64,000 bases of DNA from Tubulanus polymorphus (taxonomy: Eukaryota; Animalia; Nemertea). Position numbers and translations under genes: made by a program. How positions within the stretch are numbered: the stretch's first letter is position 1; each line of letters starts with the position of its first letter. Positions 9,101 through 58,900 of the stretch are shown piece by piece. Below the pieces are notes generated by a model, which was not told the DNA's origin, did no database searches, and was given only the letters and a program-made list of their open reading frames with translations. The DNA is taken from NCBI RefSeq assembly GCF_964204645.1, contig NW_027437467.1:1-64000 (forward strand), written 5' to 3'.

Positions 9101-12100
9101 CATTGTCGTTTTACCGATAGGGAGAATATTCGACACGAAAACGTCTTTTCTCGCGCTGAGCGACGTTTTCGCGTCGAAAAGTGCTTTTCCTGACGATTTG
9201 AGCGCTTTTACGCATCGGCATTGTCGTTTTTCCGATAGGGGGAATATCCGAAAAGAAAACGTCTTTTCTCGCGCTGAGCGACGTTTTCGCGTCGAAAATT
9301 GCTTTTCCTGACGATTTGAGCGCTTTTACGCATCGACATTGTCGTTTTTCCGATAGGGGGAATATTCGATAAGAAAACGTCTTTTCTCGCGCTGAACTAC
9401 GTTTTCGCGTCGAAAAGTGCTTTTCCTGACGATTTGAGCGCTTTTACGCATCGACATTGTCGTTTTACCGATAGGGAGAATATTCGACACGAAAACGTCT
9501 TTTCTCGCGCTAAACGACGTTTTCGCGTCGAAAAGTGCTTTTCCTGACGATTTGAGCGCTTTTACGCATCGACATTGTCGTTTTACCGATAGGGAGAATA
9601 TTCGACACGAAAACGTCTTTTCTCGCGCTTAGCGACGTTTTCGCGTCGAAAAGTGCTTTTCCTGACGATTTGAGCGCTTTTACGCATCGGCATTGTCGTT
9701 TTTCCGATAGGGGGAATATTCGAAAAGAAAACGTCTTTTCTCGCGCAGAGCGACGTTTTCGCGTCGAAAAGTGCTTTTCCTGACGATTTGAGCGCTTTTA
9801 CGCATCGGCATTGTCGTTTTTCCGATAGGGGGAATATTCGATACGAAAACGTCTTTTCTCGCGCCGAACGACGTTTTCGCGTCGAAAAGTGCTTTTCCTG
9901 ACGATTTGAGCGCTTTTACGCATCGACATTGTCGTTTTACCGATAGGGAGAAGATTCGACACGAAAACGTCTTTTCTCGCGCTGAGCGACGTTTTCGCGT
10001 CAAAAAGTGCTTTTCCTGACGATTTGAGCGCTTTTACGCATCGGCATTGTCGTTTTTCCGATAGGGGGAATATCCGAAAAGAAAACGTCTTTTCTCGCGC
10101 TGAGCGACGTTTTCGCGTCGAAAAGTGCTTTTCCTGACGATTTGAGCGCTTTTACGCATCGACATTGTCGTTTTACCGATAGTGAGAATATTCGATACGA
10201 AAACGTCTTTTCTCGCGCTGAACGACGTTTTCGCGTCGAAAAGTGCTTTTCCTGACGATTTGAGCGCTTTTACGCATCGACATTGTCGTTTTTCCGATAG
10301 GGGGAATATTGGATAAGAAAACGTCTTTTCTCGCGCTGAACTACGTTTTCGCGTCGAAAAGTGCTTTTCCTGACGATTTGAGCGCTTTTACGCATCGACA
10401 TTGTCGTTTTACCGATAGGGAGAATATTCGACACGAATACGTCTTTTCTCGCGCTAAACGACGTTTTCGCGTCGAAAAGTGCTTTTCCTGACGATTTGAG
10501 CGCTTTTACGCATCGACATTGTCGTTTTACCGATAGGGAGAATATTCGACACGAAAACGTCTTTTCTCGCGCTGAGCGACGTTTTCGCGTCGAAAAGTGC
10601 TTTTCCTGACGATTTGAGCGCTTTTACGCATCGGCATTGTCGTTTTTCCGATAGGGGGAATATTCGAAAAGAAAACGTCTTTTCTCGCGCAGAGCGACGT
10701 TTTCGCGTCGAAAAGTGCTTTTCCTGACGATTTGAGCGCTTTTACGCATCGGCATTGTCGTTTTTCCGATAGGGGGAATATTCGATAAGAAAACGTCTTT
10801 TCTCGCGCTGAACGACGTTTTCGCGTCGAAAAGTGCTTTTCCTGACGATTTGAGCGCTTTTACGCATCGGCATTGTCGTTTTTCCGATAGGAAGAATATT
10901 CAATACGAAAACGTCTTTTCTGGCGCCGAACGACGTTTTCGCGTCGAAAAGTGCTTTTCCTGACGATTTGAGCGCTTTTACGCATCGACATTGTCGTTTT
11001 ACCGATAGGGAGAATATTCGACACGAAAACGTCTTTTCTCGCTCTGAACGACGTTTTCGCGTCGAAAAGTGCTTTTCCTGACGATTTGAGCGCTTTTACG
11101 CATCGGCATTGTCGTTTTTCCGATAGGGGGAATATTCGAAAAGAAAACGTCTTTTCTCGCGCAGAGCGACGTTTTCGCGTCGAAAAGTGCTTTTCCTGAC
11201 GATTTGAGCGCTTTTACGCATCGGCATTGTCGTTTTTCCGATAGGGAGAATATTCGACACGAAAACGTCTTTTCTCGCGCTGAGCGACGTTTTCGCGTCG
11301 AAAAGTGCTTTTCCTGACGATTTGAGCGCTTTTACGCATCGGCATTGTCGTTTTTTCCGATAGGGGGAATATTCGAAAAGAAAACGTCTTTTCTCGCGCA
11401 GAGCGACGTTTTCGCGTCGAAAAGTGCTTTTCCTGACGATTTGAGCGCTTTTACGCATCGGCATTGTCGTTTTTCCGATAGGGGAATATTCGATACGAAA
11501 ACGTCTTTTCTCGCGCCGAACGACGTTTTCGCGTCGAAAAGTGCTTTTCCTGACGATTTGAGCGCTTTTACGCATCGGCATTGTCGTTTTTTCCGATAGG
11601 GGAATATTCGATACGAAACGTCTTTTCTCGCGCTGAACGACGTTTTCGCGTCGAAAAGTGCTTTCCTGACGATTTGAGCGCTTTTACGCATCGACATTGT
11701 CGTTTTTCCGATAGGGGGAATATTCGAAAAGAAAACGTCTTTTCTCGCGCTGAGCGACGTTTTCGCGTCGAAAAGTGCTTTTCCTGACGATTTGAGCGCT
11801 TTTACGCATCGGCATTGTCGTTTTTCCGATAGGGGGAATATTCGAAAAGAAAACGTCTTTTCTCGCGCAGAGCGACGTTTTCGCGTCGAAAAGTGCTTTT
11901 CCTGACGATTTGAGCGCTTTTACGCATCGGCATTGTCGTTTTTCCGATAGGGGGAATATTCGAAAAGAAAACGTCTTTTCTCGCGCAGAGCGACGTTTTC
12001 GCGTCGAAAAGTGCTTTTCCTGACGATTTGAGCGCTTTTACGCATCGGCATTGTCGTTTTTCCGATAGGGGGAATATTCGAAAAGAAAACGTCTTTTCTC

Positions 12101-15100
12101 GCGCAGAGCGACGTTTTCGCGTCGAAAAGTGCTTTTCCTGACGATTTGAGCGCTTTTACGCATCGGCATTGTCGTTTTTCCGATAGGGGGAATATTCGAA
12201 AAGAAAACATCTTTTCTCGCGCCGAGCGACGTTTTCGCGTCGAAAAGTGCTTTTCCTGACGATTTGAGCGCTTTTACGCATCGACATTGTCGTTTTACCG
12301 ATAGTGAGAATATTCGATACGAAAACGACTTTTCTCGCGCTGAACGACGTTTTCGGGTCGAAAAGTGCTTTTCCTGACGATTTGAGCGCTTTTACGCATC
12401 GGCATTGTCGTTTTTCCGATAGGGGGAATATTCGATACGAAAACGTCTTTTCTCGCGCCGAACGACGTTTTCGCGTCGAAAAGTGCTTTTCCTGACGATT
12501 TGAGCGCTTTTACGCATCGGCATTGTCGTTTTACCGATAGGGAGAATATTCGACACGAAAACGTCTTTTCTCGCGCTGAACGACGTTTTCGCGTCGAAAA
12601 GTGCTTTTCCTGACGATTTGAGCGCTTTTACGCATCGGCATTGTCGTTTTTCCGATAGGGGGAATATTCGATACGAAAACGTCTTTTCTCGCGCTGAACG
12701 ACGTTTTCGCGTCGAAAAGTGCTTTTCCTGGCGATTTGAGCGCTTTTACGCATCGACATTGTCGTTTTACCGATAGGGAGAATATTCGACACGAAAACGT
12801 CTTTTCTCGCGCCGAACGACGTTTTCGCGTCGAAAAGTGCTTTTCCTGACGATTTGAGCGCTTTTACGCATCGACATTGTCGTTTTACCGATAGGGAGAA
12901 TATTCGACACGAAAACGTCTTTTCTCGCGCCGAACGACGTTTTCGCGTCGAAAAGTGCTTTTCCTGACGATTTGAGCGCTTTTACGCATCGGCATTGTCG
13001 TTTTTCCGATAGGGGGAATATTCGAAAAGAAAACGTCTTTTCTCGCGCAGAGCGACGTTTTCGCGTCGAAAAGTGCTTTTCCTGACGATTTGAGCGCTTT
13101 TACGCATCGGCATTGTCGTTTTTCCGATAGGGGGAATATTCGAAAAGAAAACGTCTTTTCTCGCGCTGAGCGACGTTTTCGCGTCGAAAAGTGCTTTTCC
13201 TGACGATTTGAGCGCTTTTACGCATCGGCATTGTCGTTTTTCCGAAAGGGGGAATATTCGACACGAAAACGTCTTTTCTCGCTCTGAACGACGTTTTCGC
13301 GTCGAAAAGTGCTTTTCCTGACGATTTGAGCGCTTTTACGCATCGGCATTGTCGTTTTTCCGATAGGGGGAATATTCGATACGAAAACGTCTTTTCTCGC
13401 GCTGAACGACGTTTTCGCGTCGAAAAGTGCTTTTCCTGACGATTTGAGCGCTTTTACGCATCGACATTGTCGTTTTACCGATAGGGAGAATATTCGACAC
13501 GAAAACGTCTTTTCTCGCGCTGAACGACGTTTTCGCGTCGAAAAGTGCTTTTCCTGACGATTTGAGCGCTTTTACGCATCGGCATTGTCGTTTTTCCGAT
13601 AGGGAAATATTCGATACGAAAACGTCTTTTCTCGCGCTGAACGACGTTTTCGCGTCGAAAAGTGCTTTTCCTGACGATTTGAGCGCTTTTACGCATCGAC
13701 ATTGTCGTTTTACCGATAGGGAGAATATTCGACACGAAAACGTCTTTTCTCGCGCTGAACGACGTTTTCGCGTCGAAAAGTGCTTTTCCTGACGATTTGA
13801 GCGCTTTTACGCATCGGCATTGTCGTTTTTCCGATAGGGGGAATATTCGATACGGAAACGTCTTTTCTCGCGCTGAACGACGTTTTCGCGTCGAAAAGTG
13901 CTTTTCCTGACGATTTGAGCGCTTTTACGCATCGACATTGTCGTTTTACCGATAGGGAGAATATTCGACACGAAAACGTCTTTTCTCGCGCTGAACGACG
14001 TTTTCGCGTCGAAAAGTGCTTTTCCTGACGATTTGAGCGCTTTTACGCATCGACATTGTCGTTTTACCGATAGGGAGAATATTCGACACGAAAACGTCTT
14101 TTCTCGCGCTGAACGACGTTTTCGCGTCGAAAAGTGCTTTTCCTGACGATTTGAGCGCTTTTACGCATCGACATTGTCGTTTTTCCGATAGGGGGAATAT
14201 TCGAAAAGAAAACGTCTTTTCTCGCGCTGAGCGACGTTTTCGCGTCGAAAAGTGCTTTTCCTGACGATTTGAGCGCTTTTACGCATCGGCATTGTCGTTT
14301 TTCCGATAGGGGGAATATTCGAAAAGAAAACGTCTTTTCTCGCGCTGAGCGACGTTTTCGCGTCGAAAAGTGCTTTTCCTGACGATTTGAGCGCTTTTAC
14401 GCATCGGCATTGTCGTTTTTCCGATAGGGGGAATATTCGAAAAGAAAACGTCTTTTCTCGCGCAGAGCGACGTTTTCGCGTCGAAAAGTGCTTTTCCTGA
14501 CGATTTGAGCGCTTTTACGCATCGGCATTGTCGTTTTTCCGATAGGGGGAATATTCGAAAAGAAAACGTCTTTTTTCGCGCAGAGCGACGTTTTCGGGTC
14601 GAAAAGTGCTTTTCCTGACGATTTGAGCGCTTTTACGCATCGGCATTGTCGTTTTTCCGATAGGGGGAATATTCGAAAAGAAAACATCTTTTCTCGCGCA
14701 GAGCGACGTTTTCGCGTCGAAAAGTGCTTTTCCTGACGATTTGAGCGCTTTTACGCATCGGCATTGTCGTTTTTCCGATAGGGGGAATATTCGAAAAGAA
14801 AACATCTTTTCTCGCGCCGAGCGACGTTTTCGCGTCGAAAAGTGCTTTTCCTGACGATTTGAGCGCTTTTACGCATCGACATTGTCGTTTTACCGATAGT
14901 GAGAATATTCGATACGAAAACGACTTTTCTCGCGCTGAACGACGTTTTCGGGTCGAAAAGTGCTTTTCCTGACGATTTGAGCGCTTTTACGCATCGGCAT
15001 TGTCGTTTTTCCGATAGGGGGAATATTCGATACGAAAACGTCTTTTCTCGCGCCGAACGACGTTTTCGCGTCGAAAAGTGCTTTTCCTGACGATTTGAGC

Positions 15101-18100
15101 GCTTTTACGCATCGGCATTGTCGTTTTTCCGATAGGGGGAATATTCGATACGAAAACGTCTTTTCTCGCGCTGAACGACGTTTTCGGGTCGAAAAGTGCT
15201 TTTCCTGACGATTTGAGCGCTTTTACGCATCGGCATTGTCGTTTTTCCGATAGGGGGAATATTCGATACGAAAACGTCTTTTCTCGCGCCGAACGACGTT
15301 TTCGCGTCGAAAAGTGCTTTTCCTGACGATTTGAGCGCTTTTACGCATCGGCATTGTCGTTTTTCCGATAGGGGGAATATTCGAAAAGAAAACGTCTTTT
15401 CTCGCGCTGAACTACGTTTTCGCGTCGAAAAGTGCTTTTCCTGACGATTTGAGCGCTTTTACGCTTCGACATTGTCGTTTTACCGATAGTGAGAATATTC
15501 GATACGAAAACGTCTTTTCTCGCGCCGAACGACGTTTTCGCGTCGAAAAGTGCTTTTCCTGACGATTTGAGCGCTTTTACGCATCGGCATTGTCGTTTTT
15601 CCGATAGGGGGAATATTCGATACGAAAACGTCTTTTCTCGCGCCGAACGACGTTTTCGCGTCGAAAAGTGCTTTTCCTGACGATTTGAGCGCTTTTACGC
15701 ATCGGCATTGTCGTTTTTCCGATAGGGGGAATATTTGATAAGAAAACGTCTTTTCTCGCGCTGAACTACGTTTTCGCGTCGAAAAGTGCTTTTCCTGACG
15801 ATTTGAGCGCTTTTACGCATCGACATTGTCGTTTTTCCGATAGGGGGAATATTCGATACGAAAACGTCTTTTCTCGCGCCGAACGACGTTTTCGCGTCGA
15901 AAAGTGCTTTTCCTGACGATTTGAGCGCTTTTACGCATCGGCATTGTCGTTTTTCCGATTGGGGGAATATTCGATACGAAAACGTCTTTTCTCGCGCCGA
16001 ACGACGTTTTCGCGTCGAAAAGTGCTTTTCCTGACGATTTGAGCGCTTTTACGCATCGACATTGTCGTTTTACCGATAGTGAGAATATTCGATACGAAAA
16101 CGTCTTTTCTCGCGCCGAACGACGTTTTCGCGTCGAAAAGTGCTTTTCCTGACGATTTGAGCGCTTTTACGCATCGACATTGTCGTTTTACCGATAGTGA
16201 GAATATTCGATACGAAAACGTCTTTTCTCGCGCTGAACGACGTTTTCGCGTCGAAAAGTGCTTTTCCTGACGATTTGAGCGCTTTTACGCATCGGCATTG
16301 TCGTTTTTCCGATAGGGGGAATATTCGAAAAGAAAACGTCTTTTCTCGCGCTGAGCGACGTTTTCGCGTCGAAAAGTGCTTTTCCTGACGATTTGAGCGC
16401 TTTTACGCATCGGCATTGTCGTTTTTCCGATAGGGGGAATATTCGAAAAGAAAACGTCTTTTCTCGCGCTGAGCGACGTTTTCGCGTCGAAAAGTGCTTT
16501 TCCTGACGATTTGAGCGCTTTTACGCATCGGCATTGTCGTTTTTCCGATAGGGGGAATATTCGAAAAGAAAACGTCTTTTCTCGCGCTGAACTACGTTTT
16601 CGCGTCGAAAAGTGCTTTTCCTGACGATTTGAGCGCTTTTACGCATCGGCATTGTCGTTTTTCCGATAGGGGGAATATTCGATACGAAAACGTCTTTTCT
16701 CGCGCCGAACGACGTTTACGGGTCGAAAAGTGCTTTTCCTGACGATTTGAGCGCTTTTACGCATCGACATTGTCGTTTTACCGATAGGGAGAATATTCGA
16801 CACGAAAACGTCTTTTCTCGCGCCGAACGACGTTTTCGCGTCGAAAAGTGCTTTTCCTGACGATTTGAGCGCTTTTACGCATCGGCATTGTCGTTTTTCC
16901 GATAGGGGGAATATTCGAAAAGAAAACGTCTTTTCTCGCGCTGAGCGACGTTTTCGCGTCGAAAAGTGCTTTTCCTGACGATTTGAGCGCTTTTACGCAT
17001 CGGCATTGTCGTTTTTCCGATAGGGGGAATATTCGAAAAGAAAACGTCTTTTCTCGCGCTGAACTACGTTTTCGCGTCGAAAAGTGCTTTTCCTGACGAT
17101 TTGAGCGCTTTTACGCTTCGACATTGTCGTTTTACCGATAGTGAGAATATTCGATACGAAAACGTCTTTTCTCGCGCTGAACGACGTTTTCGCGTCGAAA
17201 AGTGCTTTTCCTGACGATTTGAGCGCTTTTACGCATCGACATTGTCGTTTTTCCGATAGGGGGAATATTGGATAAGAAAACGTCTTTTCTCGCGCGGAAC
17301 GACGTTTTCGCGTCGAAAAGTGCTTTTCCTGACGATTTGAGCGCTTTTACGCATCGACATTGTCGTTTTTCCGATAGGGGGAATATTCGAAAAGAAAACG
17401 TCTTTTCTCGCGCTGAGCGACGTTTTCGCGTCGAAAAGTGCTTTTCCTGACGATTTGAGCGCTTTTACGCATCGACATTGTCGTTTTACCGATAGTGAGA
17501 ATATTCGATACGAAAACGTCTTTTCTCGCGCTGAACGACGTTTTCGCGTCGAAAAGTGCTTTTCCTGACGATTTGAGCGCTTTTACGCATCGGCATTGTC
17601 GTTTTTCCGATAGGGGGAATATTCGAAAAGAAAACGTCTTTTCTCGCGCTGAGCGACGTTTTCGCGTCGAAAAGTGCTTTTCCTGACGATTTGAGCGCTT
17701 TTACGCATCGGCATTGTCGTTTTTCCGATAGGGGGAATATTCGAAAAGAAAACGTCTTTTCTCGCGCTGAGCGACGTTTTCGCGTCGAAAAGTGCTTTTC
17801 CTGACGATTTGAGCGCTTTTACGCATCGGCATTGTCGTTTTTCCGATAGGGGGAATATTCGAAAAGAAAACGTCTTTTCTCGCGCTGAACTACGTTTTCG
17901 CGTCGAAAAGTGCTTTTCCTGACGATTTGAGCGCTTTTACGCTTCGACATTGTCGTTTTACCGATAGTGAGAATATTCGATACGAAAACGTCTTTTCTCG
18001 CGCCGAACGACGTTTTCGCGTCGAAAAGTGCTTTTCCTGACGATTTGAGCGCTTTTACGCATCGGCATTGTCGTTTTTCCGATAGGGGGAATATTCGATA

Positions 18101-18366: not shown

Positions 18367-18384
18367 TGGTGCCGTGACCAGGAT
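18367..18384 (+). promoter_or_regulatory. Primer-binding site complementary to the 3' 18 nt of tRNA-His
   Basis: TGGTGCCGTGACCAGGAT starts 1 nt after the LTR. Its reverse complement ATCCTGGTCACGGCA-CCA matches the invertebrate-type tRNA-His(GTG) 3' end as I recall it; the vertebrate form would give ...GACTCGGAT. Confidence 0.88.
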
Positions 18385-18391
18385 CAGCCGA

Positions 18392-21300
18392 ATGGAGGAT
18401 ACTCAACTGAACCGGTCGACAATCACACGAACTGCAATCAGGCAGAAAGTTGATGATCTCGTCGTGAAATCGTCAACAATCGTCGAAGATTTTCGAACGA
18501 CCGAAGACGATGTAGATTTACTAAATATCTACATCGAGCAGATCACAGAAAAGTTAAGTCGACTAGAGAAGCTAGACTCGACAATCGAGGACCTAACTCC
18601 TTTAACGCATCTTTCAGACACGATTCAAGAAGCAGAGGACTTCAGATCTAGCGTCATCGAAAAACGCGGCCGAATAATCCGATTTGTAGAAAAGGCGAAG
18701 CACACAACGCAACCTCATAATTCTTCGATGAACAATTCCGGTGCTTCTGCGACGCCATTTCGCCCGAACAAGGTAAATCTACCTAAACTTACGCTCGCCA
18801 AATTCGACGGCGATTTACTCAAATGGCAGGAATTCATAGACGGATTCAATTCAGCGGTCAACGACGACCCGAATCTCGACGACGTCGTTAAGTTTCAATA
18901 CTTACGCGCACAACTTAACGGCGAAGCTTACAGAACGATCGAGGGTCTGGCCCTCACCGCGTCGAATGATGCGAACGCACTTCAAGTACTGATAAAAAGG
19001 TATGGGCAACCGCAAATCATTATCAGTGCATATATGCGAGCGTTATGGGAACTTTCGCGACCGACAGAAGACATGCAGAGTCTGATGGAATTTTCGGATA
19101 AACTGGAAACATATATCCGAGGACTAAGTGCGCTCGGAAAAAACGAAGATAGCTACGGAGATTTGTTGACTCCGATTATCTTAGATAAACTGCCTGGGAT
19201 GATACGACGACAGATAACGAGGGATAATAACGGCGCGAATTGGAATCTCCAGTCGTTGCGAGATGCCCTTTCGAGAGAGATAACAGCGTTCCAGGCAGGA
19301 GTTTCAGTGTACCCAGAAACTGCTCACCTGGGTACCACGTCAGCGTTCCACGTGGGCAATGCGATCAAGAGAAAACCATTAAAATGTACATTTTGTAAAG
19401 GGACACATTTCGCGTCAGATTGTGTTCTTGTAACCGAACCAGAGAAACGCCTGGATATCGTTAAACGTGATAAACTTTGTTTTAATTGCATGGGCACTCA
19501 TCGTTCTCGGGACTGTAAATCCAAGAACACATGTAAAAAGTGCAGAGGGAAACATCACACGTTACTATGTGGTTCCTCCCTTACAGAAACGCGCGAGATT
19601 TCTACGAAAAATCGACCGCAAAACCCACAAAACGGAAGCAGAAGCGATTCTCACGATGTAAAAACTGTTCATCAAACGTATGCCGGCGCCCAACAACCAC
19701 GACCAGATGGGCCCATACTTCTTAAAACAGCTGTGGCGGAGATTTTTTCGCCATCAACTTCCGCTAATAACCGCTCGAATGGTCGTAAGATAAACATTTT
19801 ACTGGACGAAGGCAGCCATAGATCGTTTATCACGACGCGAATTTCTGTCAGCTTAAATCTCCCACATCTGGGCCAAGAGGAAATCAATCTAGCGACGTTC
19901 GGAGAACAACTGGCCGGTCGGCGATTACTTCAAAGAACGAACTTTAACATCGCGTCATCAGAGGGTTCACCGATACTAATTGAAGCCCTCGTGATACCGA
20001 CCATCTCCACGCCAATCAGCAATCTTGTAAACAATAAAGTTTTGGATCTTCCGCATCTGCGAAACCTAACTCTAGCGGAACAGCCATCATCAATAACCGG
20101 CGACTTTGATATCGATGTATTAATTGGCGCCGATTACTACTGGTCTATAGTCGGCGATAATACCGTGAAGGGCTACGGCCCGACTGCCGTTTCATCACGT
20201 ATAGGGTATCTCTTATCAGGGCCCATACCGAGCCACACCTTACTCACCGGAGTAAGGAATTCAACCGTTCTCAACGTATCTTGTGTGAGAAATATGGATC
20301 TCAATTCGCACCGCGGAGAGGAAGTCTCATTACAATCGTTTTGGGACTTAGAAACGATCGGCATCAAAGATGACGCTTCTTTGATAAAAAACCGTGGACT
20401 TGCTTATTCGGACTATATTAAAACCCATCTAACTGTTGATAGCGATGGACGCTATACTGCGAAACTACCTTGGAAAGAAAGCCACGCCCCCTTGCCGGAC
20501 AACAGACACGTGGCCGAAGCACGGACTCGCAGTATGATACGCCGTTTATCCGCAGAAATGAGAACCGTATACGATGCAATAATTGAAGAACAACTGTCGC
20601 GTGATTTCATAGAGGATGTAACACATGACATCTCTAGTATCGGACACTATTTACCCCACCGAGGAGTAAAAAAGGACTCTACTACCACGCCTCTCAGAAT
20701 CGTTTTCGACTGCAGTTGTAGAGTCGGAAGCGAACCGTCGTTGAATGATTGCTTGGAAACTGGACCCCCGCTCCTAAACGATTTGGTATCTATATTGTTG
20801 CGATTTCGATTGTACTCTACAGGAATATCCACCGATATCGAAAAGGCATTTTTACAAATAAGACTCCACGAACACGATCGGAAGTATACCAAATTCTTGT
20901 GGTTAACCGACCCGAATGATCCAGAAAGCGATTTCAAAGTACTTCAGTTTAAAAGTATCCTGTTCGGAGCGGTCTCGAGCCCGTTTGTTCTTAACGCCAC
21001 TGTCAAATCCCACTTAGCCAATTACGATTGCGAAACCGCGGGGAAATTGGCCGAAAACATATACGTGGATAATATCGTCACTGGAGTAACATCTGAGGAC
21101 AAAGCGATAAACTTTTATGCACAATCAAACGAAATAATGAATTCTGCAGGCTTGGCCCTCAGAGCGTGGGCAACTAATTGCCAGAGACTGCGTAATTTGG
21201 CGAGCTCGGATGGAGTAGCCGAGTCGAAACCCATCGCGAACGTCCTCGGGATCCGATGGGACACTCATAACGACACCCTTAGCATCAAGGTAGATGACGG

Positions 21301-23725
21301 AACGTCCGATCTGGTGACAAAACGTGAGGTAGTTAGCGCGGCGTCGAAGTTATATGATCCGCTTGGTTTTCTGGCCCCCGTACAGGTCAGGGCTAAGATG
21401 TACATCCAGGAACTCTGGAAACTTAATCTAGGCTGGGACGACCCAGTACAGGACGAATCAATGCGAGAAAAATGGTTCTCGATTCGGAATGATTTGTCAC
21501 GTGCGTCAGAAATTGTGTTATCAAGGAAATACTTAAGTCAACCGCAAACCCAGAATTATGAAATACACGTGTTTGCTGATAGTAGCAAAGCAGCATTTGG
21601 AGCTGTGGTTTATTTACGAAACCAGCATGATACATCGTTTGTTATGTCTAAGACACGTGTCGCACCAGTAAAGGAATTAACTATTCCACGACTGGAATTA
21701 CTTGCTGCTTTGACCGGTTCGAAGCTTATCGATTATGTAACTGAATCGCTCGGTTCCGAAATCGCTATAACCAAAAAAGTGCTTTGGAGCGATAGTCAGA
21801 TTGTGCTTTGTTGGTTGAACTCCGATCGAAAGTTACCAGTATTCGTCAGCAACCGCGTGAAACAGATTAAATCTATCAAAATTGACGAGTACCGCTACTG
21901 CCCGACGTCTGATAATCCGGCAGACATACTATCGCGTGGAATCGACTCCGAGAAACTACGGCATTCTAATTTGTGGTGGTTTGGCCCCGAATGGCTGAAA
22001 CATGGCGACTGGCCCGTGGATAAATTATACGCTGACACTAGCACAGTTAATATCCTCCACATCAACGATCCTCAACCCGGGCAGGTTGAAGACGCGGAGG
22101 ACGAACGGATTGGTTTGGTAGAAATAATCGACATTGAACGATTCATAGAGTTGGGATCATTATTACGTGTCACCGCTTACGTTTTCTTGTTTGTCGCGAA
22201 ACTTCAACGCCAGACAGATCGGTCCGCCGAGGATCTGACGCCGGATGATATAGCCCGAGCTAGAACGGCGTGGATTAAAGCTGTGCAAAATGCTAATTAT
22301 TCGAATGAAATTTTCGTGCTGCAGGGTAATCATGCAAAATCGCGAGCGCCCCTGACAAAACAGCTACGGTTGTTTATTGGCGATGATAGTTTGTTGAGAG
22401 TTGGAGGGAGACTCCATAACGCCCCGATTGATTATGGCGCGAAATTCCCAATATTACTACCCCCGAAAGGGCGATTTACCGAGTTAACTGTGATTGATGC
22501 TCACGCGAGAGCACTTCATTTGGGTACAGAATCAACGATTAACCGTATTCGACAAACGTATTGGATTCAAAGTATCAGGAAAGTCGTTAAATCTCTGTTG
22601 CGAAAATGTTACAATTGCAAAATCACTAGTGGTCAGCCATACCCACTACCGGACCCTGCACCGTTGCAGAAGAGCAGGCTGACAGATGCCCCTCCCTTTA
22701 CCGTAACGGGAGTGGATTTCACCGGACATTTGTTCGTGAGAGATAACAACAGAGAAGCGAAAGCGTATATTATCTTGTTTACATGTGCGAACACACGTGC
22801 CGTTCATCTCGAGGTTGTTTCTGATATGTCGTGTGCCACATTTCTTCTCGCCTTCCGACGTTTCGCCGCACGTCGATCCTTACCCCAAAAGTTGATAAGT
22901 GATAATGGATCGGCATTCGTGGCCGCGGCGGGAGAAATAAAGAAGCTTCTCGATATTCATTCGGTTCGAAAATACATGCTCGAGAAAAATGTTGAATGGG
23001 TATTTATACCAAAGGCCGCCCCATGGCATGGTGGCTTTTGGGAACGTTTAGTTGGACTTACGAAACAAGTTCTGAAACGTGTTTTAGTCCGCGCATACAT
23101 ATCGATGTCTGAACTTATTACGCTCGTCGCGGAAATCGAAATGGTGATCAACAACCGCCCGCTTACGTATTTGTCCGATGACGTAACTGATCCAGAACCG
23201 CTAACACCATCGCACCTCCTTCACGGACGAGTTATGTCGAATCTACCGCACCTATCTGATACCGATGCTATCAGTGATCCGGAGTATGGTGTTTCGATAA
23301 ACACACAAAACCTCCAGAAACGCGCACAAAGAGTGATGGAACTCTTCGAACATTTTCGGTCTCGTTGGACCAACGAATACGTTATTGCGCTACGTGAACG
23401 ACATCTGTCCATGCGAAATAATGGCAGAACAAGCGAGATTCGATCAGGAGACGTTGTACTCGTACACGACGACCAAAAACGTAGAATTAACTGGAAGCTT
23501 GCTATCGTAACGAAACTGAACTACGGGAACGACGGCGCAGTTCGTTCAGCAGAAATTAGAATGGGCACTACAAATACTAGCCGACCTATAAATAAACTGT
23601 TCCCGCTTGAAATTAACACCGATATGGACTTTAAAGAGCCTGGCCCCGTTATAGCCTCTGATCCGCGACCCGTGCGAAACGCAGCGCGAAAGGCTCGTGC
23701 AAAAATCGTCGAATGTTTGAAATAG
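18392..23725 (+). CDS. BEL/Pao Gag-Pol polyprotein, 1777 aa from the first ATG (DUF1759-like Gag, 3 zinc knuckles, aspartic protease, RT, RNase H, integrase with C-terminal DUF5641-like region)
   Basis: Uninterrupted ORF. Gag LPKLTLAKFDGD..KFQYL; CX2CX3HX4C x3 at 19385-19570; protease LLDEGS (~19802) and LIGAD; RT YLPH/RIVFD/DIEKAF/FG..SSP/YVDN (21062-21073); RNase H FADSS/SDSQ/NPAD; integrase H..H..CYNC with D (22715), D (22901), E (23042). The ORF-track start at 18374 is a GTG inside the PBS. Confidence 0.97.
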   Translation: MEDTQLNRSTITRTAIRQKVDDLVVKSSTIVEDFRTTEDDVDLLNIYIEQITEKLSRLEKLDSTIEDLTPLTHLSDTIQEAEDFRSSVIEKRGRIIRFVEKAKHTTQPHNSSMNNSGASATPFRPNKVNLPKLTLAKFDGDLLKWQEFIDGFNSAVNDDPNLDDVVKFQYLRAQLNGEAYRTIEGLALTASNDANALQVLIKRYGQPQIIISAYMRALWELSRPTEDMQSLMEFSDKLETYIRGLSALGKNEDSYGDLLTPIILDKLPGMIRRQITRDNNGANWNLQSLRDALSREITAFQAGVSVYPETAHLGTTSAFHVGNAIKRKPLKCTFCKGTHFASDCVLVTEPEKRLDIVKRDKLCFNCMGTHRSRDCKSKNTCKKCRGKHHTLLCGSSLTETREISTKNRPQNPQNGSRSDSHDVKTVHQTYAGAQQPRPDGPILLKTAVAEIFSPSTSANNRSNGRKINILLDEGSHRSFITTRISVSLNLPHLGQEEINLATFGEQLAGRRLLQRTNFNIASSEGSPILIEALVIPTISTPISNLVNNKVLDLPHLRNLTLAEQPSSITGDFDIDVLIGADYYWSIVGDNTVKGYGPTAVSSRIGYLLSGPIPSHTLLTGVRNSTVLNVSCVRNMDLNSHRGEEVSLQSFWDLETIGIKDDASLIKNRGLAYSDYIKTHLTVDSDGRYTAKLPWKESHAPLPDNRHVAEARTRSMIRRLSAEMRTVYDAIIEEQLSRDFIEDVTHDISSIGHYLPHRGVKKDSTTTPLRIVFDCSCRVGSEPSLNDCLETGPPLLNDLVSILLRFRLYSTGISTDIEKAFLQIRLHEHDRKYTKFLWLTDPNDPESDFKVLQFKSILFGAVSSPFVLNATVKSHLANYDCETAGKLAENIYVDNIVTGVTSEDKAINFYAQSNEIMNSAGLALRAWATNCQRLRNLASSDGVAESKPIANVLGIRWDTHNDTLSIKVDDGTSDLVTKREVVSAASKLYDPLGFLAPVQVRAKMYIQELWKLNLGWDDPVQDESMREKWFSIRNDLSRASEIVLSRKYLSQPQTQNYEIHVFADSSKAAFGAVVYLRNQHDTSFVMSKTRVAPVKELTIPRLELLAALTGSKLIDYVTESLGSEIAITKKVLWSDSQIVLCWLNSDRKLPVFVSNRVKQIKSIKIDEYRYCPTSDNPADILSRGIDSEKLRHSNLWWFGPEWLKHGDWPVDKLYADTSTVNILHINDPQPGQVEDAEDERIGLVEIIDIERFIELGSLLRVTAYVFLFVAKLQRQTDRSAEDLTPDDIARARTAWIKAVQNANYSNEIFVLQGNHAKSRAPLTKQLRLFIGDDSLLRVGGRLHNAPIDYGAKFPILLPPKGRFTELTVIDAHARALHLGTESTINRIRQTYWIQSIRKVVKSLLRKCYNCKITSGQPYPLPDPAPLQKSRLTDAPPFTVTGVDFTGHLFVRDNNREAKAYIILFTCANTRAVHLEVVSDMSCATFLLAFRRFAARRSLPQKLISDNGSAFVAAAGEIKKLLDIHSVRKYMLEKNVEWVFIPKAAPWHGGFWERLVGLTKQVLKRVLVRAYISMSELITLVAEIEMVINNRPLTYLSDDVTDPEPLTPSHLLHGRVMSNLPHLSDTDAISDPEYGVSINTQNLQKRAQRVMELFEHFRSRWTNEYVIALRERHLSMRNNGRTSEIRSGDVVLVHDDQKRRINWKLAIVTKLNYGNDGAVRSAEIRMGTTNTSRPINKLFPLEINTDMDFKEPGPVIASDPRPVRNAARKARAKIVECLK

Positions 23726-31973: not shown

Positions 31974-34900
31974 CTGACGATTTGAGCGCTTTTACGCATC
32001 GACATTGTCGTTTTACCGATAGGGAGAATATTCGACACGAAAACGTCTTTTCTCGCGCTGAACGACGTTTTCGCGTCGAAAAGTGCTTTTCCTGACGATT
32101 TGAGCGCTTTTACGCATCGGCATTGTCGTTTTACCGATAGGGAGAATATTCGACACGAAAACGTCTTTTCTCGCGCTGAACGACGTTTTCGCGTCGAAAA
32201 GTGCTTTTCCTGACGATTTGAGCGCTTTAACGCATCGGCATTGTCGTTTTTCCGATAGGGAGAATATTCGACACGAAAACGTCTTTTCTCGCGCTGAACG
32301 ACGTTTTCGCGTCGAAAAGTGCTTTTCCTGACGATTTGAGCGCTTTTACGCATCGACATTGTCGTTTTACCGATAGGGAGAATATTCGACACGAAAACGT
32401 CTTTTCTCGCGCTGAACGACGTTTTCGCGTCGAAAAGTGCTTTTCCTGACGATTTGAGCGCTTTTACGCATCGGCATTGTCGTTTTACCGATAGGGAGAA
32501 TATTCGACACGAAAACGTCTTTTCTCGCTCTGAACGACGTTTTCGCGTCGAAAAGTGCTTTTCCTGACGATTTGAGCGCTTTTACGCATCGGCATTGTCG
32601 TTTTTCCGATAGGGGGAATATTCGATACGAAAACGTCTTTTCTCGCGCGGAAAAGACGTTTTCGTGTCGAAAAGTGCTTTTCCTGACGATTTGAGCGCTT
32701 TTACGCATCGACATTGTCGTTTTTCCGATAGGGGGAATATTCGAAAAGAAAACGTCTTTTCTCGCGCCGAACGACGTTTTCGCGTCGAAAAGTGCTTTTC
32801 CTGACGATTTGAGCGCTTTTACGCATCGGCATTGTCGTTTTTCCGATAGGGGAATATTCGAAAAGAAAACGTCTTTTCTCGCGCTGAGCGACGTTTTCGC
32901 GTCGAAAAGTGCTTTTCCTGACGATTTGAGCGCTTTTACGCATCGGCATTGTCGTTTTTCCGATAGGGGGAATATTCGAAAAGAAAACGTCTTTTCTCGC
33001 GCAGAGCGACGTTTTCGCGTCGAAAAGTGCTTTTCCTGACGATTTGAGCGCTTTTACGCATCGGCATTGTCGTTTTTCCGATAGGGGGAATATTCGAAAA
33101 GAAAACGTCTTTTCTCGCGCAGAGCGACGTTTTCGCGTCGAAAAGTGCTTTTCCTGACGATTTGAGCGCTTTTACGCATCGGCATTGTCGTTTTTCCGAT
33201 AGGGGGAATATTCGAAAAGAAAACGTCTTTTCTCGCGCAGAGCGACGTTTTCGCGTCGAAAAGTGCTTTTCCTGACGATTTGAGCGCTTTTACGCATCGG
33301 CATTGTCGTTTTTCCGATAGGGGGAATATTCGAAAAGAAAACGTCTTTTCTCGCGCCGAGCGACGTTTTCGCGTCGAAAAGTGCTTTTCCTGACGATTTG
33401 AGCGCTTTTACGCATCGACATTGTCGTTTTACCGATAGGGAGAATATTCGACACGAAAACGTCTTTTCTTGCGCTGAACGACGTTTTCGCGTCGAAAAGT
33501 GCTTTTCCTGACGATTTGAGCGCTTTTACGCATCGACATTGTCGTTTTACCGATAGTGAGAATATTCGATACGAAAACGACTTTTCTCGCGCTGAACGAC
33601 GTTTTCGGGTCGAAAAGTGCTTTTCCTGACGATTTGAGCGCTTTTACGCATCGGCATTGTCGTTTTTCCGATAGGGGGAATATTCGATACGAAAACGTCT
33701 TTTCTCGCGCCGAACGACGTTTTCGCGTCGAAAAGTGCTTTTCCTGACGATTTGAGCGCTTTTACGTATCGGCATTGTCGTTTTTCCGATAGGGGGAATA
33801 TTCGATACGAAAACGTCTTTTCTCGCGCTGAACGACGTTTTCGGGTCGAAAAGTGCTTTTCCTGACGATTTGAGCGCTTTTACGCATCGGCATTGTCGTT
33901 TTTCCGATAGGGGGAATATTTGATAAGAAAACGTCTTTTCTCGCGCTGAACTACGTTTTCGCGTCGAAAAGTGCTTTTCCTGACGATTTGAGCGCTTTTA
34001 CGCATCGGCATTGTCGTTTTTCCGATAGGGGGAATATTCGATACGAAAACGTCTTTTCTCGCGCCGAACGACGTTTTCGCGTCGAAAAGTGCTTTTCCTG
34101 ACGATTTGAGCGCTTTTACGCATCGACATTGTCGTTTTTCCGATAGGGGGAATATTCGATACGAAAACGTCTTTTCTCGCGCCGAACGACGTTTTCGCGT
34201 CGAAAAGTGCTTTTCCTGACGATTTGAGCGCTTTTACGCATCGGCATTGTCGTTTTTCCGATAGGGGGAATATTCGATACGAAAACGTCTTTTCTCGCGC
34301 CGAACGACGTTTTCGCGTCGAAAAGTGCTTTTCCTGACGATTTGAGCGCTTTTACGCATCGACATTGTCGTTTTTCCGATAGGGGGAATATTCGATACGA
34401 AAACGTCTTTTCTCGCGCCGAACGACGTTTTCGCGTCGAAAAGTGCTTTTCCTGACGATTTGAGCGCTTTTACGCATCGACATTGTCGTTTTTCCGATAG
34501 GGGGAATATTCGATACGAAAACGTCTTTTCTCGCGCCGAACGACGTTTTCGCGTCGAAAAGTGCTTTTCCTGACGATTTGAGCGCTTTTACGCATCGGCA
34601 TTGTCGTTTTACCGATAGGGAGAATATTCGACACGAAAACGTCTTTTCTCGCTCTGAACGACGTTTTCGCGTCGAAAAGTGCTTTTCCTGACGATTTGAG
34701 CGCTTTTACGCATCGGCATTGTCGTTTTTCCGATAGGGGGAATATTCGATACGAAAACGTCTTTTCTCGCGCTGAACGACGTTTTCGCGTCGAAAAGTGC
34801 TTTTCCTGACGATTTGAGCGCTTTTACGCATCGACATTGTCGTTTTTCCGATAGGGGGAATATTCGAAAAGAAAACGTCTTTTCTCGCGCCGAACGACGT

Positions 34901-37900
34901 TTTCGCGTCGAAAAGTGCTTTTCCTGACGATTTGAGCGCTTTTACGCATCGGCATTGTCGTTTTTCCGATAGGGGGAATATTCGAAAAGAAAACGTCTTT
35001 TCTCGCGCTGAGCGACGTTTTCGCGTCGAAAAGTGCTTTTCCTGACGATTTGAGCGCTTTTACGCATCGGCATTGTCGTTTTTCCGATAGGGGGAATATT
35101 CGAAAAGAAAACGTCTTTTCTCGCGCAGAGCGACGTTTTCGCGTCGAAAAGTGCTTTTCCTGACGATTTGAGCGCTTTTACGCATCGGCATTGTCGTTTT
35201 TCCGATAGGGGGAATATTCGAAAAGAAAACGTCTTTTCTCGCGCAGAGCGACGTTTTCGCGTCGAAAAGTGCTTTTCCTGACGATTTGAGCGCTTTTACG
35301 CATCGGCATTGTCGTTTTTCCGATAGGGGAATATTCGAAAAGAAAACGTCTTTTCTCGCGCAGAGCGACGTTTTCGCGTCGAAAAGTGCTTTTCCTGACG
35401 ATTTGAGCGCTTTTACGCATCGGCATTGTCGTTTTTCCGATAGGGGGAATATTCGAAAAGAAAACGTCTTTTCTCTCGCGCCGAGCGACGTTTTCGCGTC
35501 GAAAAGTGCTTTTCCTGACGATTTGAGCGCTTTTACGCATCGACATTGTCGTTTTACCGATAGGGAGAATATTCGACACGAAAACGTCTTTTCTTGCGCT
35601 GAACGACGTTTTCGCGTCGAAAAGTGCTTTTCCTGACGATTTGAGCGCTTTTACGCATCGACATTGTCGTTTTACCGATAGTGAGAATATTCGATACGAA
35701 AACGACTTTTCTCGCGCTGAACGACGTTTTCGGGTCGAAAAGTGCTTTTCCTGACGATTTGAGCGCTTTTACGCATCGGCATTGTCGTTTTTCCGATAGG
35801 GGGAATATTCGATACGAAAACGTCTTTTCTCGCGCCGAACGACGTTTTCGCGTCGAAAAGTGCTTTTCCTGACGATTTGAGCGCTTTTACGCATCGGCAT
35901 TGTCGTTTTTCCGATAGGGGGAATATTCGATACGAAAACGTCTTTTCTCGCGCTGAACGACGTTTTCGGGTCGAAAAGTGCTTTTCCTGACGATTTGAGC
36001 GCTTTTACGCATCGGCATTGTCGTTTTTCCGATAGGGGGAATATTTGATAAGAAAACGTCTTTTCTCGCGCTGAACTACGTTTTCGCGTCGAAAAGTGCT
36101 TTTCCTGACGATTTGAGCGCTTTTACGCATCGGCATTGTCGTTTTTCCGATAGGGGGAATATTCGATACGAAAACGTCTTTTCTCGCGCCGAACGACGTT
36201 TTCGCGTCGAAAAGTGCTTTTCCTGACGATTTGAGCGCTTTTACGCATCGACATTGTCGTTTTTCCGATAGGGGGAATATTCGATACGAAAACGTCTTTT
36301 CTCGCGCCGAACGACGTTTTCGCGTCGAAAAGTGCTTTTCCTGACGATTTGAGCGCTTTTACGCATCGGCATTGTCGTTTTTCCGATAGGGGGAATATTC
36401 GATACGAAAACGTCTTTTCTCGCGCCGAACGACGTTTTCGCGTCGAAAAGTGCTTTTCCTGACGATTTGAGCGCTTTTACGCATCGACATTGTCGTTTTT
36501 CCGATAGGGGGAATATTCGATACGAAAACGTCTTTTCTCGCGCCGAACGACGTTTTCGCGTCGAAAAGTGCTTTTCCTGACGATTTGAGCGCTTTTACGC
36601 ATCGGCATTGTCGTTTTTCCGATAGGGGGAATATTCGATACGAAAACGTCTTTTCTCGCGCCGAACGACGTTTTCGCGTCGAAAAGTGCTTTTCCTGACG
36701 ATTTGAGCGCTTTTACGCATCGGCATTGTCGTTTTTCCGATAGGGGGAATATTCGATACGAAAACGTCTTTTCTCGCGCCGAACGACGTTTTCGCGTCGA
36801 AAAGTGCTTTTCCTGACGATTTGAGCGCTTTTACGCATCGACATTGTCGTTTTACCGATAGTGAGAATATTCGATACGAAAACGTCTTTTCTCGCGCCGA
36901 ACGACGTTTTCGCGTCGAAAAGTGCTTTTCCTGACGATTTGAGCGCTTTTACGCATCGACATTGTCGTTTTACCGATAGTGAGAATATTCGATACGAAAA
37001 CGTCTTTTCTCGCGCTGAACGACGTTTTCGCGTCGAAAAGTGCTTTTCCTGACGATTTGAGCGCTTTTACGCATCGGCATTGTCGTTTTTCCGATAGGGG
37101 GAATATTCGAAAAGAAAACGTCTTTTCTCGCGCTGAGCGACGTTTTCGCGTCGAAAAGTGCTTTTCCTGACGATTTGAGCGCTTTTACGCATCGGCATTG
37201 TCGTTTTTCCGATAGGGGGAATATTCGAAAAGAAAACGTCTTTTCTCGCGCTGAGCGACGTTTTCGCGTCGAAATGTGCTTTTCCTGACGATTTGAGCGC
37301 TTTTACGCATCGGCATTGTCGTTTTTCCGATAGGGGGAATATTCGAAAAGAAAACGTCTTTTCTCGCGCTGAACTACGTTTTCGCGTCGAAAAGTGCTTT
37401 TCCTGACGATTTGAGCGCTTTTACGCATCGGCATTGTCGTTTTTCCGATAGGGGGAATATTCGATACGAAAACGTCTTTTCTCGCGCCGAACGACGTTTA
37501 CGGGTCGAAAAGTGCTTTTTCCTGACGATTTGAGCGCTTTTACGCATCGACATTGTCGTTTTACCGATAGGGAGAATATTCGACACGAAAACGTCTTTTC
37601 TCGCGCCGAACGACGTTTTCGGGTCGAAAAGTGCTTTTCCTGACGATTTGAGCGCTTTTACGCATCGGCATTGTCGATTTTCCGATAGGGGGAATATTTG
37701 ATAAGAAAACGTCTTTTCTCGCGCTGAACTACGTTTTCGCGTCGAAAAGTGCTTTTCCTGACGATTTGAGCGCTTTTACGCATCGGCATTGTCGTTTTTC
37801 CGATAGGGGGAATATTCGATACGAAAACGTCTTTTCTCGCGCCGAACGACGTTTTCGCGTCGAAAAGTGCTTTTCCTGACGATTTGAGCGCTTTTACGCA

Positions 37901-55900: not shown

Positions 55901-58900
55901 ACGACGTTTTCGCGTCGAAAAGTGCTTTTCCTGACGATTTGAGCGCTTTTACGCATCGGCATTGTCGTTTTTCCGATAGGGGGAATATTCGATACGAAAA
56001 CGTCTTTTCTCGCGCCGAACGACGTTTTCGCGTCGAAAAGTGCTTTTCCTGACGATTTGAGCGCTTTTACGCATCGACATTGTCGTTTTTCCGATAGGGG
56101 GAATATTCGAAAAGAAAACGTCTTTTCTCGCGCTGAGCGACGTTTTCGCGTCGAAAAGTGCTTTTCCTGACGATTTGAGCGCTTTTACGCATCGACATTG
56201 TCGTTTTTCCGATAGGGGGAATATTCGACACGAAAACGTCTTTTCTCGCGCTGAGCGACGTTTTCGCGTCGAAAAGTGCTTTTCCTGACGATTTGAGCGC
56301 TTTTACGCATCGACATTGTCGTTTTACCGATAGGGAGAATATTCGACACGAAAACGTCTTTTCTCGCGCCGAACGACGTTTTCGCGTCGAAAAGTGCTTT
56401 TCCTGACGATTTGAGCGCTTTAACGCATCGGCATTGTCGTTTTTCCGATAGGGAGAATATTCGACACGAAAACGTCTTTTCTCGCGCTGAACGACGTTTT
56501 CGCGTCGAAAAGTGCTTTTCCTGACGATTTGAGCGCTTTTACGCATCGACATTGTCGTTTTTCCGATAGGGGGAATATTCGACACGAAAACGTCTTTTCT
56601 CGCGCTGAGCGACGTTTTCGCGTCGAAAAGTGGTTTTCCTGACGATTTGAGCGCTTTTACGCATCGGCATTGTCGTTTTTCCGATAGGGGGAATATTCGA
56701 AAAGAAAACGTCTTTTCTCGCGCAGAGCGACGTTTTCGCGTCGAAAAGTGCTTTTCCTGACGATTTGAGCGCTTTTACGCATCGGCATTGTCGTTTTTCC
56801 GATAGGGGGAATATTCGAAAAGAAAACGTCTTTTCTCGCGCAGAGCGACGTTTTCGCGTCGAAAAGTGCTTTTCCTGACGATTTGAGCGCTTTTACGCAT
56901 CGACATTGTCGTTTTTCCGATAGGGAGAATATTTGATAAGAAAACGTCTTTTCTCGCGCTGAACTACGTTTTCGCGTCGAAAAGTGCTTTTCCTGACGAT
57001 TTGAGCGCTTTTACGCATCGACATTGTCGTTTTACCATACGCACTGAAAACGTCTTTTCTCGCGCTGAGAGACGTTTTCGTGTCGAATAGTGCTTTTCCT
57101 GACGATTTGAGCGCTTTTACGCATCGACATTGTCGTTTTACCGATAGTGAGAATATTCGATACGAAAACGACTTTTCTCGCGCTGAACGACGTTTTCGGG
57201 TCGAAAAGTGCTTTTCCTGACGATTTGAGCGCTTTTACGCATCGGCATTGTCGTTTTTCCGATAGGGGGAATATTCGATACGACTTTTCTCGCGCTGAAC
57301 GACGTTTTCGGGTCGAAAAGTGCTTTTCCTGACGATTTGAGCGCTTTTACGCATCGACATTGTCGTTTTACCGATAGGGAGAATATTCGATACGAAAACG
57401 TCTTTTCTCGCGCTGAACGACGTTTTCGCGTCGAAAAGTGCTTTTCCTGACGATTTGAGCGCTTTTACGCATCGGCATTGTCGTTTTTCCGATAGGGGGA
57501 ATATTCGATACGAAAACGTCTTTTCTCGCGCCGAACGACGTTTTCGCGTCGAAAAGTGCTTTTCCTGACGATTTGAGCGCTTTTACGCATCGACATTGTC
57601 GTTTTTCCGATAGGGGGAATATTCGAAAAGAAAACGTCTTTTCTCGCGCTGAGCGACGTTTTCGCGTCGAAAAGTGCTTTTCCTGACGATTTGAGCGCTT
57701 TTACGCATCGACATTGTCGTTTTTCCGATAGGGGGAATATTCGACACGAAAACGTCTTTTCTCGCGCTGAGCGACGTTTTCGCGTCGAAAAGTGCTTTTC
57801 CTGACGATTTGAGCGCTTTTACGCATCGACATTGTCGTTTTACCGATAGGGAGAATATTCGACACGAAAACGTCTTTTCTCGCGCCGAACGACGTTTTCG
57901 CGTCGAAAAGTGCTTTTCCTGACGATTTGAGCGCTTTAACGCATCGGCATTGTCGTTTTTCCGATAGGGAGAATATTCGACACGAAAACGTCTTTTCTCG
58001 CGCTGAACGACGTTTTCGCGTCGAAAAGTGCTTTTCCTGACGATTTGAGCGCTTTTACGCATCGACATTGTCGTTTTACCGATAGGGAGAATATTCGACA
58101 CGAAAACGTCTTTTCTCGCGCTGAACGACGTTTTCGCGTCGAAAAGTGCTTTTCCTGACGATTTGAGCGCTTTTACGCATCGGCATTGTCGTTTTACCGA
58201 TAGGGAGAATATTCGACACGAAAACGTCTTTTCTCGCGCTGAACGACGTTTTCGCGTCGAAAAGTGCTTTTCCTGACGATTTGAGCGCTTTTACGCATCG
58301 GCATTGTCGTTTTACCGATAGGGAGAATATTCGACACGAAAACGTCTTTTCTCGCGCTGAACGACGTTTTCGCGTCGAAAAGTGCTTTTCCTGACGATTT
58401 GAGCGCTTTTACGCATCGACATTGTCGTTTTACCGATAGGGAGAATATTCGACACGAAAACGTCTTTTCTCGCGCTGAACGACGTTTTCGCGTCGAAAAG
58501 TGCTTTTCCTGACGATTTGAGCGCTTTTACGCATCGACATTGTCGTTTTTCCGATAGGGGGAATATTCGAAAAGAAAACGTCTTTTCTCGCGCTGAGCGA
58601 CGTTTTCGCGTCGAAAAGTGCTTTTCCTGACGATTTGAGCGCTTTTACGCATCGACATTGTCGTTTTTCCGATAGGGGGAATATTCGATAAGAAAACGTC
58701 TTTTCTCGCGCTGAACTACGTTTTCGCGTCGAAAAGTGCTTTTCCTGACGATTTGAGCGCTTTTACGCATCGACATTGTCGTTTTACCGATAGGGAGAAT
58801 ATTCGACACGAAAACGTCTTTTCTCGCGCTGAACGACGTTTTCGCGTCGAAAAGTGCTTTTCCTGACGATTTGAGCGCTTTTACGCATCGACATTGTCGT

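Follow-up and report, generated by a model that had tools for sequence, protein, structure and literature searches.

The satellite array and the variant monomer

The window, by which we mean the whole stretch of 64,000 nucleotides analysed here, is filled nearly entirely by a 118-bp tandem satellite, in which 489 monomers were parsed by anchors and aligned to their consensus. A 6-kb insert breaks the array at about 18.1-24.1 kb; in it, a single uninterrupted reading frame of 1,783 aa (18374-23725) carries the domains of a Pao retrotransposon peptidase (A17), a reverse transcriptase and an integrase, so that the insert can be assigned to the BEL/Pao-type retrotransposons inside the satellite. 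On the whole, the same family is found at one internal locus per large contig, namely on C1 (15.7 Mb), C3 (16.8 Mb), C4 (13.55 Mb), C6 (13.4 Mb), C7 (12.9 Mb), C8 (5.2 Mb), C9 (6.9 Mb) and C11 (6.6 Mb), and several small contigs are also filled by it. This layout, with one locus on each large contig, suggests a candidate centromeric satellite. A conserved satellite 33-mer has 4,360 occurrences in the 268-Mb assembly and is present in 39% of the monomers that we collected, from which we extrapolate roughly 10,000-17,000 monomers for the whole assembly. For comparison among arrays we used a set of 1,898 monomers from at least five arrays, which comprises the window, 200 kb of C1, C4, C8 and C38, and eight 3-kb loci. 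Monomer positions are numbered from CCTGACG throughout, with the left arm at 59-80, the spacer at 81-87 and the right arm at 88-108. Two further observations concern the array of the window as such. Four monomers, at 52417, 55700, 57216 and 59691, share an identical 6-nt deletion in the left arm (positions 69-74), and their spacing of 1.5-3.3 kb suggests a marker of a higher-order repeat. Moreover, an identical pair of 100-bp units (monomers 18 nt shorter) is present at both 8833-9042 and 61194-61403, a sign that a large segment of the array may have been duplicated.

The monomer of main concern lies at 32563-32681 on the forward strand and is 119 nt long. Aligned to the 118-nt consensus of the window monomers, it shows four clustered rare changes only, these being T87G (32649), C91A together with an extra A (32651-32654), and C102T (32665); position 30 also differs, at a polymorphism of 50:50. 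Its left arm (32621-32642, forward strand, monomer positions 59-80) is identical to the consensus and is followed by the 7-nt spacer TCGCGCG (32643-32649, forward strand), of which the final base is the derived G, and then by the rewritten right arm (32650-32671, forward strand), in which 32650-32665 and 32627-32642 are exact reverse complements of each other. By inverted-repeat search the two arms are 22 nt each and 95% complementary, with 21 of 22 positions paired, 7 nt between them and T32626 against G32666 as the sole mismatch. This bears out the arms, the pairing and the 7-nt loop described in the first-pass annotation of this DNA, and its rule that position i pairs with 167-i agrees with the numbering from CCTGACG. 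An imperfect inverted repeat pre-exists in the canonical monomer, where 59-75 pairs with 92-108 except for mismatches at 64/103 and 65/102, and the stem has passed from 17 interrupted to 22 near-perfect base pairs in the variant. In addition, the derived G at 32649 makes CGCGCG self-complementary, and the whole 51 nt form a palindrome with one unpaired T. Folded as single-stranded DNA, the variant monomer reaches -22.8 kcal/mol (z = -7.3 against shuffles) and its two neighbouring monomers -16.5 and -11.4 kcal/mol; it is the strongest hairpin among the 1,898 monomers, for which the median fold is -11.0 kcal/mol. The 27-mer of its right arm occurs once in the 268-Mb assembly. Scanning the same assembly with the extended-palindrome pattern (through positions 76-80) gave a match at the variant site alone, and with the mirror of this pattern zero matches, while a metagenome scan with a 28-mer of the variant also gave no match.

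Ancestral state and donor templates of the cluster

The ancestral state can be read from the array itself, as the 18-monomer type pattern around the site repeats once. The first copy of this tandem duplication (32445-34568, forward strand, 18 monomers, 2,124 bp) contains the variant monomer, and the second copy (34569-36692, forward strand) differs from it at 10 places, which are the four of the cluster, two substitutions and four small indels, the copies being 99.5% identical. In the second copy, the paralogous monomer (34687-34804, forward strand) carries the ancestral right arm, having T87, C91 and C102 and no insertion. Since this paralogue is normal, all four changes, G32649 included, are derived in the variant. 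The tandem duplication thus gives an ancestor-descendant pair for every monomer inside it, and satellite tandem duplicates of this kind are usable as such pairs for reading complex mutations. Judged from this comparison, the cluster arose after, or together with, a very recent duplication.

The derived cluster, delimited by the paralogue comparison and by rare-allele statistics, comprises T>G, +A, C>A and C>T within 17 nt (32649-32665, forward strand). Outside it the two duplication copies differ at about 0.003 per base, and rare alleles amount to 0.0027 per site in the window array, at which rate about 0.003 clusters of four in 17 nt are expected array-wide. With so low a background, the four changes are not independent, and their joint origin follows on statistical grounds. 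When the same four changes were placed at random, none of 20,000 placements matched the gain of 9.1 kcal/mol found in the variant.

We then consider the templates from which the cluster could be copied; in a brute-force four-point search, the paralogue was taken as the ancestor. The variant's own left arm is an exact reverse-complement donor for 32650-32665 (16 nt). An alternative donor is the left arm of the upstream neighbour, of the GACACG type (32503-32524, forward strand), and its reverse complement equals 32650-32671 exactly (22 nt). These local donors, at most 150 nt away, reproduce C>A, the inserted A and C>T, where the additional A is templated by the fourth T in the TTTT run of the left arm. 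An exact single local copy including G32649 was not returned by the four-point search, the best all-inclusive solutions keeping one mismatch there; this base would be templated only if T81 were skipped in copying, or if the donor were a rare left arm of the CTTTTCC type. It had been proposed in the first-pass annotation that one copy event from the opposite arm explains most of the clustered changes, and this stands for C>A, the +1 A and C>T, which are copied exactly, but not for T>G at 32649, which falls outside a plain copy of the opposite arm. As hundreds of near-identical potential donors exist, a single donor cannot be named. The sequence identity between the rewritten arm and such donors is a matter of observation, as are the derived state, the clustering and the uniqueness of the changes.

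The best explanation, to which we give a probability of about 0.7, is that the variant was made by a single short template-switch mutation in living cells. During DNA synthesis through the variant monomer, in replication or repair, the growing strand would quit its template in the right arm and re-anneal on the complementary left arm via the perfect 9-bp core GAAAACGTC/GACGTTTTC. From the left arm, either the monomer's own (16 nt exact) or that of the upstream neighbour (22 nt exact), 13 to 22 nt would be copied before a return via the shared outer GTCGAA, by which GAAC-GACGTTTTCGC would become GAAAAGACGTTTTCGT with two substitutions and the +1 insertion together. The T>G beside the entry point would belong to the same event, although it is not simply templated and requires an extra assumption. 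The nascent strand may have folded on itself or switched between strands, at a fork or in repair synthesis; an extruded hairpin is not required by a template switch, and an inter-strand switch yields the identical product. The adjacent duplication makes repair synthesis attractive, though it proves nothing. From the features observed we infer the mechanism, its occurrence in vivo, the strand involved and the mediation by a hairpin or between strands. The template-switch reading given to the variant at first pass is therefore well supported, with changes that are derived and clustered and with three of them reproduced from within 150 nt. For published template switches, the median length copied is 12 nt and the sequence grows longer in 65% of events (PMC7954356); the 13-22 nt copied here, with one base gained on balance, are in keeping with this. 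In comparative genomics template switching is widespread (PMC7954356, PMC8794818), and the conversion of a quasi-palindrome into a palindrome by this process is established and long known in bacteria and yeast (PMC7202029, PMC3820800).

Read evidence and alternative origins

Reads of four runs were placed on 32560-32760 (201 bases). For runs X3 and X4, the Logan contigs leave 32653-32664 at zero depth, it being a property of such contigs that they drop rare variants, and run X2 provides a canonical contig only, which begins at 32655 and has T at 32665. Run X8 consists of raw Illumina reads from another sample, at about 7x against thousands of canonical copies, and canonical reads clipped at 32655 dominate in it. 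About 6% of the X8 reads have T at 32665; most simply, these would be left arms placed in reverse on the rewritten arm.

On another reading the variant is an artefact, produced by a template switch in vitro, for example in low-input library amplification, or by a consensus error of the assembler, in a genome having the normal right arm. Inverted repeats are known as sites where polymerases change template in vitro. The variant occurs once in the assembly, on a contig (C50) that is an unplaced satellite piece, and its specific bases have no X3 or X4 contig over them. However, Logan contigs lose rare variants by construction, and silence is what is expected for one copy among about 10,000 monomers. 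Consensus errors, moreover, are mostly homopolymer indels rather than four coordinated changes, and the two 2.1-kb copies are cleanly resolved otherwise, so we consider an artefact unlikely. A stepwise origin starts from the fact that, by 14-mers, the strictly private part of the cluster is GAAC>GAAAA only, with G87 and T102 each present as alleles in other arrays. It would have these two alleles combined by conversion, and GAAC changed to GAAAA afterwards by slippage on the direct repeat GAAAAG (106-111), which is found 17 nt downstream. G87 is indeed common on contig C8 (97 copies) and T102 is present on C4, C7, C9 and C18 (9 copies), C>AA being the one private step. Against this, all four changes are absent from the paralogue at a distance of 2,124 bp, while the copies otherwise differ by two substitutions, aside from small indels; G87 and T102 each occur in a single other monomer among 488 in the window array, and in combination in no other monomer of the dataset; and the direct repeat shares 6 nt, compared with 16-22 nt for the inverted donor. 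We hold this succession of steps to be extremely improbable.

The donor may also have been a distant one. Besides the variant site, the 17-mer at 32649-32665 has exact matches at 11 places in the genome, on contigs C3, C11, C35, C38 and C58; these were rejected as further copies of the variant, being left arms on the opposite strand with the CTTTTCC variant. In an ectopic copy, a CTTTTCC-type left arm elsewhere in the centromeric arrays, in inverted orientation, would have been copied in repair synthesis. That all 11 matches are such left arms on the other strand speaks for it, as does the exact 17-nt tract, by which all four changes, G87 too, are explained. Yet such a CTTTTCC donor is absent from the 64-kb window, and longer tracts copied from local donors, at most 150 nt away, account for three of the four changes. 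An ectopic copy is still template switching, between monomers rather than in the local dyad, and in our estimation it is very unlikely to be the source of the cluster.

Opposite-strand reads were also seen at the site. In run X8, which comes from another individual, 22 raw Illumina reads (11 + 11, with 17 start sites) switch strand at 32650/32655, following the plus strand to 32650 and then the minus strand from 32655 downward, with at most 56 nt on the shorter side. The switch reads as a fold-back with the spacer AAAAG. Its junction is absent from the assembly, and a simulation of 150-mers over 290 kb of canonical arrays did not reproduce it. The reads may stem from a genuine fold-back, from a chimera of the library or from another cause. 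One may think of template switching at the dyad as recurrent in this candidate centromeric satellite, so that a strand which returns leaves a perfected palindrome and one which does not return leaves a fold-back inversion, the X8 reads being such a junction. We regard this extension as quite unlikely. If true, dyad-centred switching would drive orientation flips and the turnover of centromeric arrays.

The dyad in the satellite family and in known systems

Apart from a template switch at the variant, the first-pass annotation had proposed that the hairpin shapes the evolution of the satellite. We compared 290 rare arm haplotypes, each with its nearest common haplotype, and used 300 randomisations that preserve the type of change. 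Of these haplotypes, 42 are stabilising, where 33.4 ± 5.1 are expected (P=0.06), and 153 destabilising, where 154 are expected; among single changes, 26 are stabilising and 22.7 are expected (P=0.25). Enrichment is confined to the extreme tail, where 3 events reach -4 kcal/mol or lower and 0.7 would be expected (P=0.03). Watson-Crick gains at mismatched pairs amount to 43 of 92, against 34.1 ± 4.4 after correction for the substitution spectrum (P=0.03), a result inflated by alleles that are common elsewhere. Overall, changes that stabilise the hairpin are not clearly in excess among the 290 rare haplotypes of the 1,898 monomers.

The pairing of the stem across the family was also surveyed. In 94-99% of the 1,898 monomers the core 67-75/92-100 forms Watson-Crick pairs, and the outer stem is mostly broken between arrays, being paired in 30% at 61/106, 7% at 64/103 and 61% at 66/101. 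At the level of subfamilies, compensatory states occur at 57/110 (T-A in 1,229 monomers, A-T in 526) and at 66/101 (C-G in 1,023, A-T in 140, with A.G in 669 as an apparent intermediate), while the 3 double-change pairs are not above shuffles (3.2) or slid controls (5-7). Besides the variant, the pattern scan of 268 Mb found no perfected palindromes spreading or recurring in arrays. These tests therefore lend no support to a role of the hairpin in shaping the satellite, given P=0.06, an extended palindrome that occurs once and an outer stem that is degraded in most arrays. Any bias in the family is faint at most, and the variant is a one-off, a single young event; most common variants weaken the outer stem, and the process is not shown to govern the evolution of the family.

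Some other monomers deserve mention for their likeness to the variant. In the singleton at 63556-63673, A65G (GACGCG) perfects the 17-bp stem, and with -21.0 kcal/mol the fold is the second strongest of the 1,898. At 56992-57097 there is a complex monomer of 106 bp, in which about 12 nt are deleted and the left arm is rewritten. Apart from the variant it is the only window monomer in which A91 and T102 are combined; in its right arm, the stretch AGACGTTTTCGT is likewise the reverse complement of a canonical left arm. These two monomers may be of the same kind as the variant. A91 and T102 are found together in two window monomers and in eight copies on contig C6 only. The eight C6 right arms (L029/L030, 13.42-13.45 Mb), with A91, T102 and T103, belong to a divergent subfamily and lie 3-7 kb apart, spaced like a member of a higher-order repeat. 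As a further case of template switching C6 was rejected, because neither T102 nor T103 finds its complement in the C6 left arm (CTTGATGAG); a search of C6 by two anchor patterns gave no match. In the G87 subfamily of contig C8, the monomer at L020:6052 has lost T81, by which a perfect 12-nt palindrome, TTCCGCGCGGAA, is formed at the dyad centre. Finally, 75 private multi-base clusters were scanned by 14-mers, and for none of them did a local reverse complement offer an explanation; the cluster of the variant was itself missed because G87 and T102 exist elsewhere, which shows that the scan is too strict.

Taken as one event, the variant is a clean natural case of one-step perfection of a quasi-palindrome, polarised by a tandem paralogue of 99.5% identity, and it indicates that a dyad-bearing satellite is able to generate long palindromes. 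The event is rare, being one in about 1,900 monomers and one in the genome-wide pattern scan. The kind of process is already known, and what is new is a well-polarised example in a satellite. Closest to it are the quasi-palindrome mutations of the Ripley model in E. coli and yeast reporters (PMC7202029, PMC3820800), where an imperfect inverted repeat likewise precedes the change, and a multi-base change, frameshift included, brings one arm into exact complementarity with the other and lengthens the arms. Unlike those, which were selected in reporters, the variant is inferred from one natural animal satellite sequence, and one of its four changes is untemplated by the simple model. The switches of the four-point model (PMC7954356; PMC8794818) are alike in that a cluster is a reverse-complement copy from at most 150 nt away, with a typical tract length and a net insertion, and creates a stable hairpin; there, however, the ancestor is an orthologue, whereas here it is a tandem paralogue inside a repeat array. 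Short dyads have also been described in centromeric satellites (PMC5889037), to which our satellite, itself a candidate centromeric one, compares in having a dyad of about 9 bp conserved in every monomer and one internal locus per large contig. Those are standing dyads under 10 bp, while the variant is a one-off extension to 22 bp.
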